From contig BAAFSQ010000295.1 of the NCBI GenBank assembly GCA_054661495.1, positions 1 through 12,201 of the forward strand: a stretch of DNA of 12,201 nt, written 5' to 3'. The notes under the pieces are model-generated. The model worked only from the letters and a program-made list of their open reading frames with translations, had not been told where the DNA came from and ran no database searches. Positions within the stretch are counted from its first letter, which is position 1. The number at the start of each line of letters is the position of its first letter. This document shows, one piece after another, positions 4,325-12,201 of this stretch. A program made the translations under genes and the position numbers. The stretch comes from Zygophlyctis sp. KS116. Lineage: Eukaryota > Fungi > Chytridiomycota.

Positions 4325-4351
4325 GTGAATTATTTCATTTGATTAATTTTA

Positions 4352-7182
4352 TTAAAACTCAATCGGTACTTTAATAGGTTTAATATTCCAAATTCTTTCT
4401 GCATAGTCCTGAATAGAACGATCAGAACTAAAGTGACCCATACTGAGTGCTGCAAGAATCGACTTTCTGGCCCAGACATCCTTGTCTCTGAAGTCCTTGT
4501 ACACCTTCTCCATTGTATTAAGGTCTATAGCTTTATAAAGTTTAAGTCTTACAATCTTCAAAGTCTTGATTTATCAAATAATAGTCATTTCTTAACGTGG
4601 CTAACATTATAAAGAGTTTTAAGATACCGATCAATGGATCAAAGATATGAATATCTCCAAAAATCCCAGACTGAATGGCTTTAATTACTACTTCGACTTT
4701 TGGACAAGTTTTGACACCTCTGAATGTTTGCTCATGACGAATGTCTTCAACTTCATGAGCTAATCGACCGAATAAGTAAATGTTATCAGGGCCTGTGGCT
4801 TCTCCAATTTCAATATTTGCTGCATTTAAAAAACAAAATTTACCTCCATCTACAGTTCCAACTATCAGGCCTCCATTCAAAACAAACTTCATGTTTGACG
4901 TTCCAGACGCTTCCGTTCCAGCGGTGGAAATATGCTGGCTTATATCTGAAGCAGGAATTATAATTTCTAATTTTTAAGAAAATATGGCCGTACCAGCAAC
5001 AGAAACATTATAGTTTGGGATAAAAATCACTTTCAAGTAATCGCCAATCTTTTCATCATTATTTACCACGCTTGCAACGCTTGTAATCAGTTTAATGACC
5101 AGCTTAGCAATATAATATCCTGGAGCACTTTTACCAGAGAAAATAACTAGAGCAAATTAAATAATAATTGATACTTACCAACTCGCGGAACCACTTTTGA
5201 TAGAATATCTTTTTTCATAGACTTCAATTCAATATACTGATAAATAACACCCATTATGTTCATAAATTGTCGCTTATATTCATGGAGACGCTTGCACTAA
5301 GATTTAATCTAGAAATTATCCATACCTGTACATCAAAAAGTGCATTTGAAGAAACTTGAACTCCAAGTAAAGTGGAGATAAAGCTAGCCAATTTCTTCTA
5401 TTTTCTTAAAAAAATATAAAAATACCTTATTTTCAGTTTTAATTTCCATCCATTTTTTGGAAAATGCTGGATTATCGGCCTGAGGTTTCAATTTCCCTAA
5501 TAGATTTAAATCGCGAAGCCACTCTGTCCCCTTTAGAGAATCAGTTATTAATGAGCTGAGATCAGGATTTGCTTGATGTAGCCATCGTCTTGGAGTAACT
5601 CCGTTAGTAACATTAGTGAACTTTTCCTTTCCAAAAAACTCGACAAACTCCTTTAATAAAACACTCTGGACTAATTCCGAATGAAGAGCCGCCACACCAT
5701 TAATACAGTGCGATCCAACAACTGCCAAATAAGCCATTCGGACATGCTGAGGGCTACCCTCTTCGATAATCGACATTCTTTGAAGTTTTTCACGATTTCC
5801 AGGATATTGTTTTTCAACCCGTTGTAGAAAGTACAAATTGATTGCAAAAATAATCATCATATGCCTTGGCAGTAATTCCTGCATCATACTGACAGGCCAT
5901 TTTTCCAATGCCTCTGGAAGGACAGTGTGATTTGTATAAGAGTATGTATTTGTTACAATTTCCCATGCTTCATCCCATTCAATTTGTTCTTCATCTACAA
6001 GAATACGTTGCAATTCTGCAATTCCAAGAGTTGGGTGAGTATCATTCAACTGAATAGCTACCTGATTGGGGAAATCTCTCCAACTTTTGCCTGTTTTCTT
6101 AAAACGTCTAATTATATCTGCCAAAGTCGCACAAACAAAGAAATATTGCTGTTTTAAACGCAATCTAAATGCATATTAATTTAAAATTATTACTCTTTTC
6201 CTGAATAATGATTGTCATTTGGATACAGCACAGATGTAATATTTTCAGCAGCCTTTTGTTCTTCAACTGACTTATCATAGTTTCCGGCATTAAAACTTGC
6301 CAAATCAAACTCTTTAACAGGTTTTGAGCTCCAGAGTCGAATATTAATAGTATTATGAGTTCCGTATCCTGGAATTGGATAATCATACGCAACTGCAACA
6401 ACTTTTTCCGCACTTTCCCAAGTAAACTTTTCTTTTCCATCAGGTGTTTCATGCCTTATTACATGACCTCTAAATTTCACATCATATGATACATCTAATC
6501 TCGGGATTTCCCAAGCATTTCCAAAACTTAACCAATAATCTGGAAATTCTTGTTGATAACCATCGACAATCTGTTGCTGAAAGATACCATATGAATATCT
6601 AATCCCATATCCCCATGCAGGATAATTTAAAGTTGCAAGAGAATCCATAAAACAAGCAGCCAATCTTCCAAGACCACCATTTCCTAAAGCAGCATCCAGT
6701 TCTTCCTGTACTAAATCTTCGATATTAAAACCCAAACTTTCCAATGCATTCGAAAATTCTGGTTTAATTCTTAAATTCAACAGAGCATTATCCAAACTAC
6801 GACCCAACAACTACAATTAGAAATATTCATATACAAATTCCAGTGAGAGATAATAGACTCTTTTAGTATTATATTGTGTATGGCATTGTTGGGTAGCATT
6901 CCATAAATCAATCAAACGATCACGAACACTTAGAGCTGTGGCTTGATATGCAGCAAATCCATCTAAATTAGAAGCACTTCGAGCAAGTGTTTTTGAAACA
7001 TGTCGACAAATACTTATCTCTATGGACTCGATGTCATTCTTGTCCGGTCTGGAGAGTTTCTTCCAAAGTTCAGAGCGTTCTGGGGAAGGAGAGTAAGGAA
7101 CATGAACTTGAGGAAGAGTTAGACCTCTTTGTAGAGTATGTTCTTCCTTTGATTTTGTCGGTGATAATTGAATGTTTGACAT
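4352..7182 (-). CDS. GPH1: Glycogen phosphorylase, 860 aa, 10 exons; introns 6811-6834, 6165-6193, 5398-5425, 5297-5325, 5147-5178, 4967-4993, 4820-4843, 4601-4627, 4525-4552
   Basis: [48 protein letters not shown]-site [20 protein letters not shown] and FSSDRSI. The spliced length is 2583 nt, in frame. Confidence 0.96.
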
Positions 7183-7401: not shown

Positions 7402-9327
7402 ATGGATACAGCAAGATCATCTCATAAAGATAATTTTGAAAGTCCTGCGCAGCTTTCGTTACCAGAGCCGCCCCCAGAATTTTCAGTAGAACAGAATGTA
7501 AGAGGTGGATTTGCCCTCCGGACACTCAAGGTACAAAAAAAGAGCTAAAATCAGACATATGGAGAGTCAATGTATGATCTAAATAGAAACTTTCTTCAGG
7601 AAATAAAGAGATCACAAGAAATCATACAAAAGTTGTTAACGGAAAAACTAGAATTAAAGAGTAAATTGAAAATTCTCTAATATTTAGAGGGACTGCATCA
7701 ATCAGCTGAAAAAATAGCTCTTTATAAATCGAAATTGGATAGCAACAATCGGGTTACGAAGTCTGCGTAATTTACAAGTTATTAATGATCAGGGAAGAAT
7801 ATGAAAGAATAATTATCGAAGAGATTCATAAAAGAACTAGTCAGGAAGAATCGGGAATGGCATTACTAAAAGAGAGAGATCAGGCTTTGGAACAAGTAGA
7901 AAAGTTGAAAACGTAAGTAAGCCATTATTTGATTTTTAGACTAATAGGGATCTATTAAAACTTGTGGAAGAAAAACAATTACAAGAGAAATTGAATATAG
8001 AACAAAAGGATAAAGTGGAGGAATTGGTTCTTTTATCAAAGTACCAGAGAATTTTATAATGAATTAGTAAAAATATTTTCGAAAAGGATGAACTTCATGT
8101 GTACTTTATCAAGATTGAAAGAGAATTAACTGAATTAAAAAAGAGTATGGTAGTGGTTGGACAGAAAAATGAAGTTTTAACTCAAAAAGAATCTATGTTA
8201 AAGGAAGAGAATACTCTTTTACAAAAAAGACTTCGGTATATTCTTTATGAACTAATAATAGTGAGCTGATTGATGCTAATAAGGAAATTACGACAAATTA
8301 TCAGGCAATCAAAAAAAATCATGACTCTAAACAAAATGAATTTCAAGAAATTATGGCGGAATTAGAAGAAACCAAGAGCACACTTTCAAACGTTCATAAG
8401 CAGAAAAAAGCTGTTCAGGCAGAGCTTGGTGAAATGTCTAAAGCGGATACGGAACTGAAAGAAAAAATTAAATCTCTTGAAGTTACAATTGCAAAAAAAG
8501 ATAAGGAAATTAATCAAGCAATCACAAAGTTGAATGATACAATTTCAGATTACGAGCAAAAATTAGAACGGAAGGAAGAACAAATATGGGTTATGGGATC
8601 TCAAATCAATGAATGTATCCTTGTAGTTTTTAATTATTAGCAAATGAAGCTGCTGCAAAGGCAAAGGCCGCACTCTCAGATCAAGAACAAGCAGCAGCTT
8701 GGAAAGTCCAAAACGAAGCCCCTCAAAAAACTATTAACCTTGATGCAGATCTACTTAGTGATCTCGATAGAAAATGGCAAGCAAAAGAAAAGATACTGGC
8801 GGATGAAGTCACAAATCTTGAATCAAAACTAAAAGCTGCAGAAGATAATATTATCAGACTTAATAATCAAGTTTCAGACTTGACAAAGAGACAATTCGAG
8901 CCTCGAATGGAACGATTAAAACTGATTGAAAGAGATATTAAGAATAGGATTGAGGAGTATATTCTTGCTGAAGAGAGAATGGAAACATGCCTTTTATGTC
9001 CTCGCGACTTGCAAGTATTTAAAATTCCTCTGACATTGGTTCCTTGTGGTGTAAACAATTAATATTAATTATCTAGCATACATATTGTAAATGCTGCATT
9101 GAATCAATCGTTGAAGAAAATTACAATGTCATCAAGTGTCAAGTCTGCTCTCAAGTTGCTGATGCCGCCTATCATAATCAGCAATTAGAATCCATCACTG
9201 AACAATTCACCAGAAGAAAGACGATGGTCATCTCATTTTTAGAATGGTAAATGGCATTTGATTAAATTGTAGGTCCAAATCTCTCCGAGTTTATCTTCCT
9301 GTAGAGCAGACAAGCGACGAAAAATAA
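7402..9327 (+). CDS. Long coiled-coil protein with C-terminal RING finger (putative E3 ligase), about 560 aa; introns 7531-7554, 7661-7687, 7767-7792, 7913-7947, 8041-8067, 8236-8261, 8615-8640, 9051-9076, 9247-9272
   Basis: Nine 24-35 nt GT-AG introns join an E/K/L-rich heptad frame (1683 nt) ending in CLLCPRDLQVFKIPLTLVPCGHTYCKCC...CQVC...NQQLESI. The start codon and last intron are less certain. Without the last intron the stop is at 9248-9250. Confidence 0.75.
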
Positions 9328-10590
9328 TGTCTCGCATCGTATGCAGTCCAAATGAAGTTGAATATCTGAATGCGATTGAATTAAAAAATAAAAGGCTGAT
9401 GAGACTTGAACAAGTGAGTAAAATGGTTCCAATCCTTAGGTGCGACGACAGGATAAAGAAAATGCTCTTAAAAGGCGTCAAAAGTATAAGAAAATCGCAA
9501 GTCAAGAATGGGGAAACGTGCTGGAGGATTTGCAGGTATGCTACAGGTTACGCTGATACTCAAAGAGCAAATGGAACGCGAATAAACAGCAAGAACTTGA
9601 CAAGATGAATCAAATGTATAAAAATCATATGCTACATTTTGGAATGGCGATGAATTCAGCGATCAGTAGAGAAGAAGAAAAGGTATCATGCTATAAATTT
9701 TAATTTTTAAGCTGATAGAACAGGAGCAATTCCGGCAGCAGGTGGTAAATGACCAACAGAAGGAAAATGAACGATTTATCTCATCTTTAGAAACTGTAAA
9801 CTTTGCCAATACATTAAATGAATAGTTTAGAGTTTTAGATAAAGACAGGAAAAAGGAATACGTAGAAAAGCAAGCTCTTAAGGAGAAAATTATAGAAATT
9901 GAGAATGAAAGAGCCGTTAAGATGGCTGCAATTTTTAGGGCTCGTGTTAAAGCAGGAATAGCATACAATATTGAAATACCACATCATCCCGTAGGAAGTC
10001 ATAAATTTAACAGATCGGGTGGAGTTGGATACGATGAAACCTGCTATCATCGAAACTTTGTCGCAGTAAAATGTCAGAATCAGAGTAAAACGGAGAAAGT
10101 ACCAGATGCATGGGATCAGGCAGAAATCGCACAACAAGATCATAAGAAATTGATGCGTGAAAAACAGGCACAAATGAAGAAAATGCAGGAATTAAACATT
10201 CAAAGGACACAAATTGCTAAAAAGGCGCAGATCATGAATAAAACTAGAAAAATATTAGATCAAGAAATGAATGACATTATTGTAGATGACAGATTAAGAA
10301 GGAAAGCTAATGCGGGAGAGTTTGCTGGATTCTTTAGACAATTGTACTTTGATGTTGGAGAAAAGGATCTTGTAAAAAGATTTGAAACCCAATTTCAGAT
10401 TGGTATATTTTAAATATTCTTAATGTAAATAGAAGATGGAACTCAAAATCATGCACCACCTCGTCATTTCCCAGTCCGACCCAATCAAGAAAAAGAAAAA
10501 TCTTTAGAAAACAGTATTGAGATTGTGAAGGGAGAAAATGATCTTAAAGTATTGCCCGGACATACAATTTTCACATCAAATTCAAAGTAG
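9327..10590 (+). CDS. CEP295/Ana1 (DDC8-like N-terminal domain) centriolar protein homolog, about 372 aa; introns 9414-9439, 9536-9565, 9683-9711, 9796-9825, 10403-10432
   Basis: The spliced N-terminus CSPNEVEYLNAIELKNKRLMRLEQVRRQDKE resembles, from memory, human CEP295 LSPNEE...RRRKLRLLQVREQER. Later YH...PDA...A, D-x-x-RR and L-x-x-x-FE blocks occur in the same order. The spliced length is 1119 nt, in frame. Confidence 0.7.

Positions 10591-11647: not shown

Positions 11648-12201
<554 letters not shown>

Follow-up and report, generated by a model that had tools for sequence, protein, structure and literature searches.

An exact stop-start overlap between two tandem intron-containing genes in the compact genome of the chytrid Zygophlyctis sp. 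KS116

Introduction

Genes lying head to tail with next to nothing between them have been studied in the microsporidian Encephalitozoon cuniculi, where rapid amplification of cDNA ends (RACE) revealed 5' untranslated regions (UTRs) of less than 7 nt, promoter signals beside the ATG, and a mixture of mono- and polycistronic transcripts (PMC2803860). Here we analyse a junction in the chytrid Zygophlyctis sp. KS116 where the stop codon of a gene for a RING-finger protein and the start codon of the next gene on the same strand share a base in the sequence TAATG. The junction lies at positions 9325-9329 of contig BAAFSQ010000295.1 (C295), a complete contig of 12.2 kb from an assembly of 12.7 Mb in 1175 contigs; below, the window means this whole contig, and positions are those of the window. 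The junction is one case of genome-wide extreme compaction, and in this respect E. cuniculi is, by analogy, the nearest documented analogue. Microsporidia likewise pack roughly one gene into every 1-2 kb, with minimal spacers, with poly(A) signals on or close to the stop codons, with promoter signals beside the ATG and with transcripts expected to enter neighbouring genes (PMC2803860). However, head-to-tail overlaps of coding sequences (CDSs) number nine in the entire E. cuniculi genome after start correction, whereas here there are three exact TAATG overlaps in 212 kb. Unlike E. cuniculi, the present genome also has many ultrashort spliceosomal introns, one of them within 80 nt upstream of the next start.

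Other known systems resemble the locus in part. The bicistronic loci of green algae have collinear open reading frames (ORFs) separated by tiny distances and kept in relatives (PMC7896298, PMC11291117), and in some Auxenochlorella loci the ORF1 stop and the ORF2 start codons overlap (PMC11291117). By contrast, ORF1 of the algae is short (its median in A. protothecoides is 291 nt) and leaky scanning gives access to ORF2, while here ORF1 is 1.7 kb long. In the hypovirus CHV1-EP713, which replicates in a fungal host, UAAUG joins a long ORF to an ORF in another frame (PMC2699510); the present locus differs from it in being nuclear, in having introns, in having no detected upstream cis element, and in the 7-nt spacer of one relative. 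In mushroom-forming fungi, polycistronic transcripts are long reads spanning neighbouring genes (PMC4503453), and these are tandem fungal genes too, although the two genes considered here are only possibly co-transcribed. Finally, bacterial translational coupling at TAATG or ATGA has the same sequence geometry and the same recurrence across the genome; unlike in bacteria, the present locus is nuclear and eukaryotic, both of its genes have spliceosomal introns, and cap-dependent translation is to be expected.

Results

The overlap and the two coding frames

Bases 9320-9329 of the plus strand read aaaaaTAATG. The RING gene ends with TAA at 9325-9327, the downstream gene starts with ATG at 9327-9329, and base 9327 belongs to both codons. 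This geometry had been proposed in the initial annotation of the window, according to which the RING gene, once spliced, stops at this TAA and leaves zero intergenic space. The first point is borne out by the splice scores and by the relatives, and the second by the sequence itself together with the conserved coding frames.

The upstream RING gene (7402-9327, plus strand) starts with ATG at 7402, and its spliced ORF model consists of ten exons and nine introns of 24-35 nt and encodes 561 aa. The product is a long coiled coil followed by a C-terminal canonical C3HC4 RING, the pattern of which (C-x2-C-x15-C-x-H-x2-C-x2-C-x13-C-x2-C) is visible in the translation. The sequence encoding the RING is interrupted by the intron at 9051-9076, and in an exon-by-exon Pfam search the second half of the RING gave a sub-threshold match to zf-C3HC4. 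The spliced product ends in FLEW followed by SKSLRVYLPVEQTSDEK, the latter encoded, together with the stop codon, by a terminal mini-exon of 55 nt (9273-9327, plus strand).

The downstream gene (9327-10590, plus strand) encodes a coiled-coil protein of about 373 aa, has five introns (9414-9439, 9536-9565, 9683-9711, 9796-9825, and 10403-10432), and ends with TAG at 10588-10590. Its start codon is the first ATG in its frame after the in-frame stop at 9270-9272. The N-terminus MSR[IL]VCSPNE is conserved, with changes mostly at third positions, and over the 29 codons from ATG 9327 there are 6-9 synonymous changes against 4 non-synonymous ones; the next in-frame Met is not conserved, being replaced by Ile in one of the relatives described below (L003). 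As coding-type conservation starts exactly at ATG 9327, this codon is, judging by the substitutions, the true start of the downstream gene. An N-terminal extension from ATG 9244 through 9247-9272 was rejected, as it meets a stop and a different frame in another relative (L002). A -1 frameshift at GAAAAAT was rejected too: read in the RING frame, this heptamer is not of the canonical slippery type, and L002 does not share it.

The label 'CEP295-like' that the downstream gene had been given reflects a presumed resemblance of the N-terminus only. Neither Pfam nor Atlas supports it: searched one exon at a time, the gene matched no Pfam family, and the Atlas search yielded no usable lead. Two introns of this gene, 9536-9565 and 9683-9711, have AAG acceptors. 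The same acceptor is seen in about one fifth of the predicted introns of the genome sample, and it is kept at the orthologous introns of L002, L003 and L005; hence AAG is a regular 3' splice site in this genome.

Relatives of the locus

Searching public metagenome and Logan assemblies with the fifth exon of the downstream gene yielded four related ORFs, whose contigs we compared with the window. All related contigs retain introns and are therefore DNA. Queried by word search, exon 5 and the longer ortholog P0004 gave only four ORF fragments from DNA contigs and no full-length or transcript-derived proteins, and a scan of metagenome loci with an exon 5 alignment had no hits. All related contigs share the gene order phosphorylase, RING gene, downstream gene, minus-strand gene (putative CFAP298), and GAPDH, with a collinear ortholog of the RING gene in L002, L003 and L006. 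One contig, L006, comes from a separate metagenome assembly, is 98% identical to the window and has an identical junction, which excludes an assembly error. L003 and L002 are more distant, with about 70% identity in the downstream protein and 96-97% in GAPDH.

Whether the overlap recurs in relatives was one of the points raised by the initial annotation. TAATG is found in the window, L006 and L003, while in L002 the TAA and the ATG are separated by 7 nt. Since the window appears to be an outgroup to L002, L003 and L005, the overlap is probably ancestral. At the same time, the spacer in L002 indicates that the exact overlap is dispensable.

The last intron of the RING gene

The RING frame reaches the shared base through splicing of the last intron (9247-9272, plus strand; 26 nt, gtaaat...ttgtag). 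If it is not spliced, the upstream ORF comprises 544 aa and ends in TGG-TAA with the stop at 9248-9250, which is overlapped by the donor. We scored introns with a donor, acceptor and length model trained on approximately 640 predicted introns from a genome sample of 212 kb, to which each of the five largest contigs contributed its initial 40 kb. Intron 9247-9272 scores 12.1 nats, the best value in both genes, the remaining introns having 7.0-10.8 nats. Scores of at least 12 occur at 0.06 per kb per strand in real sequence versus 0.005 per kb in shuffled sequence. In addition, the intron fits the ultrashort intron class of this genome (23-35 nt) in its GT...AG ends, length, and donor and acceptor composition.

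Introns at the same site are present in L003 (24 nt, 10.8 nats) and L002 (25 nt, 10.7 nats), where each is the sole local candidate scoring 5 or more, and the intron interiors have diverged. The lengths of 26, 25 and 24 nt in the window, L002 and L003 all differ modulo 3, and the peptide SK[ST]LRVYLP is common to the three lineages in the spliced frame only. Over nine tail codons, the window and L002 differ by three synonymous and one non-synonymous substitutions in the spliced frame, and by zero and four, respectively, in the frame of the ATG; coding-like substitutions in the mini-exon are thus confined to the spliced frame. Codons 1-9 of the mini-exon are conserved and the final eight are variable, the three-way nucleotide identity being 0.8 over 9269-9298 and falling to 0.4 over 9299-9326. 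Given the splice score and the orthologous introns and tail peptide in relatives, the predicted intron 9247-9272 is well supported and is, on these grounds, real. The possibility named by the initial annotation as fatal to the overlap, namely that 9247-9272 is left unspliced and an ordinary 76-nt gap separates the genes, is made improbable by the splice score and the conserved frame of the tail.

A Trp codon split as TG/GTAAAT before a tiny terminal exon is found in two genes, at 9244-9249 of the window and at L015:9990-9995. At both sites, an ATG within ...A-TGG sits on the donor and misleads the gene finder into placing the start of the next gene there.

Signals around the junction

A candidate poly(A) signal of the RING gene, AAATAA, occupies 9322-9327 (plus strand) and overlaps the stop codon. 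It is found at the RING stop in the window, L003 and L002, and a canonical AATAAA follows the stop at 9387-9392. Across 111 predicted genes, AATAAA, TAATAA and AAATAA are concentrated within 10 nt on either side of the stop codons; the concentration of AATAAA and TAATAA at stops suggests that the 3'UTRs are very short. A further TAATAAA lies at the end of the glycogen phosphorylase gene (approximately 4349-4355 of the window, minus strand).

Each of the five divergent gaps in the window contains the motif ACCCT/AGGGT, with 6 of its 14 occurrences falling into about 4% of the sequence. The initial annotation had stated that divergent promoters carry this motif and that none is found near the RING/downstream junction, and a scan of the window agrees, with zero occurrences between 7217 and 10839. 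In the 212-kb sample, the top k-mers upstream of genes are CGCGT/ACGCG, GTCCGA/TCGGAC and CGTCG/CGACG. Of the free promoters, 42% have at least one such promoter-type CG k-mer in the 100 nt preceding the ATG, compared with 8% of the windows taken from inside coding sequences; among predicted tandem pairs whose genes overlap or are at most 15 nt apart, some of them doubtful models, 4 of 12 have one, a small number that includes the present junction. At the junction, CGACG at 9315-9319 (plus strand), 12 nt upstream of the ATG, is a candidate promoter-type k-mer, though weak evidence for a promoter; it is kept as CGACG in L003 and as CGAC in L002 at a similar distance to the ATG.

As to other features of the region, the 28 nt before ATG 9327 are the least conserved local stretch, the mini-exon shows no extra conservation at its synonymous sites, and the spliced RNA is not unusual in its folding energy over the 100 nt preceding the junction (z-scores of 0.06, 0.8 and 1.0 in the three lineages). 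The spliced CDS of the RING gene is 1.7 kb long and contains 33 further internal ATGs.

Over all upstream regions, the strongest motifs are (A/T)CGCGT and GTCCGA/TCGGAC, with z up to 12. One region of the window, the bidirectional promoter at 11660-11700 between the putative CFAP298 gene and GAPDH, holds TCGGAC, AGGGT, ACGCGT and GACCCT in 57 nt.

Gene packing in the window and in the genome sample

Gene models in the 212-kb sample come from a home-made finder. Its untrained setting fuses the RING and downstream genes and a too strict one splits real genes; the intermediate setting recovers all 11 genes of the window. The setting used for the census still split at least one gene wrongly (an NDK-domain gene, C5 11433/11841) and placed two starts falsely, each at an ATG that directly adjoins a GT donor.

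Among 115 predicted genes, we counted 27 divergent junctions (median gap 182 nt), 26 convergent ones (24.5 nt) and 56 tandem ones (78 nt). The short median gaps imply that 3' ends take up hardly any room and must extend into neighbouring genes. In the window itself, there are five divergent, four convergent and one tandem junctions, with gaps of 35-219 nt at the divergent and 0-31 nt at the convergent ones. With convergent gaps this short, 3' ends must overlap the coding sequence of the neighbour in antisense. At 850-855, a plus-strand gene (632-852) and the minus-strand Oxa1-like gene (ending at 853) abut at a distance of 0 nt; the three remaining convergent pairs are 14, 27 and 31 nt apart.

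The RING/downstream junction had been singled out as the only tandem one. Within the window this is correct; genome-wide it is not, as about half of the junctions in the 212-kb sample are tandem and at least three more tandem pairs abut. The strict strand alternation seen in the rest of the window is, therefore, no genome rule. A count of exact overlaps, which the initial annotation had suggested, gave two further TAATG cases among the 56 predicted tandem pairs, COG4 followed by a histone deacetylase (HDAC) gene (L019:4409-4413, plus strand) and CDC45 followed by a gene for a WD40-cyclophilin protein (L026:1236-1240, minus strand). In addition, NMD3 and a family-49 glycosyltransferase gene are separated by 1 nt (TAA t ATG, around L019:7166-7168, minus strand), and an acyl-CoA dehydrogenase gene lies 4 nt from its tandem neighbour. 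According to Pfam, the abutting partners belong to distinct, unrelated families, and COG4 reaches the end of its C-terminal domain. The functional unrelatedness of the partners does not look like operon-style co-regulation.

The COG4-HDAC overlap is kept as TAATG in L027 and L029, while L028 has TAATAATG, so that the stop-start spacing across lineages is -1, -1, -1 and +2 nt. Predicted tandem gaps look bimodal, with five pairs at -1 to +4 nt, two at 5-27 nt, and the bulk at 28 nt or more.

A possible coding overlap of 62 nt was seen at L007:5145-5206 (minus strand), where a protein whose N-terminus has an F-box-like motif (MNLPPELWLKISEH...) seems to start in the upstream gene; its start falls into the last 20 codons of that gene, in another frame.

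General features of the window

The window has a G+C content of about 33% and densely packed eukaryotic genes, which include those for an Oxa1/YidC-like insertase, a p24 protein, a protein kinase, eIF6, glycogen phosphorylase and GAPDH. Its introns are 23-36 nt long, with GTA at the 5' end and TAG, CAG or AAG at the 3' end. The glycogen phosphorylase gene (minus strand) has nine ultrashort introns, zero in-frame TAA or TAG codons in its exons, and a terminal TAA. The ciliate code, in which TAA encodes glutamine, was rejected on this gene: its exons have no in-frame stops, and TAA stands where phosphorylases end, hence the genetic code is standard.

Discussion

How the two genes are expressed

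We favour, with moderate confidence, separate overlapping transcripts, the promoter of the downstream gene lying within the last intron and the mini-exon of the RING gene. Of the two mechanisms offered in the initial annotation, a shared mRNA with coupled translation and a promoter buried in the upstream gene, the indirect evidence thus leans to the second. Two unrelated genes would have been packed head to tail without a spacer by extreme compaction. The RING mRNA would be cleaved and polyadenylated just past its stop codon, within the first bases of the next gene, and the final 80 nt or so of the RING gene would contain both the promoter and the transcription start site of the downstream gene. 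Within the 80 nt preceding the ATG, the 26-nt intron and the variable last eight codons make up about 54 nt without strong coding constraint, and these would house the promoter. Read-through transcripts over both genes may exist; they would not template the downstream protein. The sequence signals, in particular AATAAA-type hexamers on stop codons and CG k-mers upstream, lean towards separate transcripts, and nothing in the sequence of the junction points to coupled translation. The conservation of TAATG needs no coupling, since the requirement for a stop and a start codon already fixes every base. Moreover, stop-start spacers of 2 nt (COG4-HDAC in L028) and of 7 nt (L002) are tolerated.

Several observations weigh against this explanation. 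ACCCT/AGGGT is absent from the 2 kb upstream of ATG 9327, and the single CGACG is the only promoter-type k-mer upstream of this ATG. An embedded promoter element is not visible as extra synonymous constraint in the mini-exon. The bimodal tandem gaps could reflect selection for close stop-start spacing, while the gap statistics rest on the home-made finder with its known merge and split errors, and the figures are rough.

The best-surviving alternative, which we nevertheless regard as unlikely, is a dicistronic spliced and capped mRNA, with termination at UAA 9325-9327 and restart at the overlapping AUG. The spacing of stop and start is tight across lineages (-1, -1 and +7 nt here; -1, -1, -1 and +2 nt at COG4-HDAC), and the spike of tandem gaps at -1 to +4 nt with a trough at 5-27 nt keeps this reading alive. 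It would also account for a junction with no typical promoter motif near it, and it has precedents: termination and reinitiation at UAAUG function on fungal ribosomes (PMC2699510), and ORF1 stop and ORF2 start overlap in verified bicistronic loci of Auxenochlorella (PMC11291117). However, the efficiency of reinitiation drops with ORF length when there is no dedicated cis element (PMC5972666, PMC11291117), and the upstream ORF has 561 codons. No reinitiation element was found at the junction: there is no stable structure, inspection by eye showed no UGGGA, and conservation is low over the 28 nt upstream. The conservation of TAATG, which might seem to speak for coupling, is already explained by the need for both codons, the partner genes are functionally unrelated, and the AATAAA-like signals on stop codons suggest cleavage right after the upstream ORF. 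At least one plausible coding overlap, that of 62 nt in L007, cannot work by reinitiation. Leaky scanning, the other route to a second ORF, is excluded, as ribosomes would have to pass a 561-codon CDS of 1.7 kb with 33 further ATGs.

The dicistronic reading can be extended to a sizeable class of tandem pairs, those with stop-start distances of -1 to +4 nt making up roughly 5% in the sample, which would be expressed by reinitiation after ORFs of 500 codons or more without a tethering element of the viral type; we find this broader version still less probable than its application to the single locus. To our knowledge, translation of the downstream ORF from the polycistronic transcripts of mushroom-forming fungi has not been established.

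Retention of intron 9247-9272 in most transcripts, with the RING gene ending in TGG-TAA (stop at 9248-9250) and a 76-nt spacer holding the promoter, seems improbable to us. Retention would bring an immediate stop in the window and a stop after four codons in L003, and the RING tail has no known function, all of which is compatible with such an arrangement. Yet these are the strongest splice signals of the locus, kept at the same site in three lineages despite the diverged interiors, and purifying selection acts on the tail peptide as read in the spliced frame. In L002, retention would produce a different tail of 27 residues.

We give very little credence to a polycistronic precursor cut at the junction, the downstream mRNA acquiring its 5' end by, for instance, trans-splicing or recapping. 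Acceptor-like sequences do lie 23 nt upstream of the ATG, ttatcttcctgtag in the window and tttatcttccttcag in L003, and AAATAA is located at the RING stop codon. The acceptor-like AG is missing in L002, however, and the sequence encodes the conserved peptide YLP, which explains the pyrimidine run upstream of the ATG. We know of no spliced-leader trans-splicing in fungi.

A single fusion gene, in which an alternative splice (9289-9314, or a 43-nt intron at 9247-9289) joins the RING and downstream frames, is the least credible of all, even though the untrained gene finder prefers it through 9289-9314 and the frame of the ATG is open back to 9273: intron 9289-9314 scores 3.3 nats, has a GTT donor, would remove the conserved VYLP and has no counterpart in relatives, a single intron of 41-43 nt would be outside the observed length range and would use a GAG acceptor, no single intron in L002 could make the fusion, and substitutions in the ATG frame are all non-synonymous upstream of the ATG and mostly synonymous downstream of it.

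Significance

If the pair is dicistronic after all, this genome would provide dozens of natural examples in which ribosomes reinitiate on cellular mRNAs after a long ORF, contrary to the usual rule that reinitiation requires short upstream ORFs, and dicistrons on a genome-wide scale would amount to a cellular use of UAAUG coupling in a eukaryote. Abutting pairs also matter for annotation, because gene finders, including our own, readily fuse or mis-start them. If the transcripts are separate, as we favour, the locus would illustrate the extent to which a eukaryotic genome can be compressed, with a promoter accommodated within the last 26-nt intron and the weakly constrained mini-exon of the previous gene, and a poly(A) site within the first codons of the next one.

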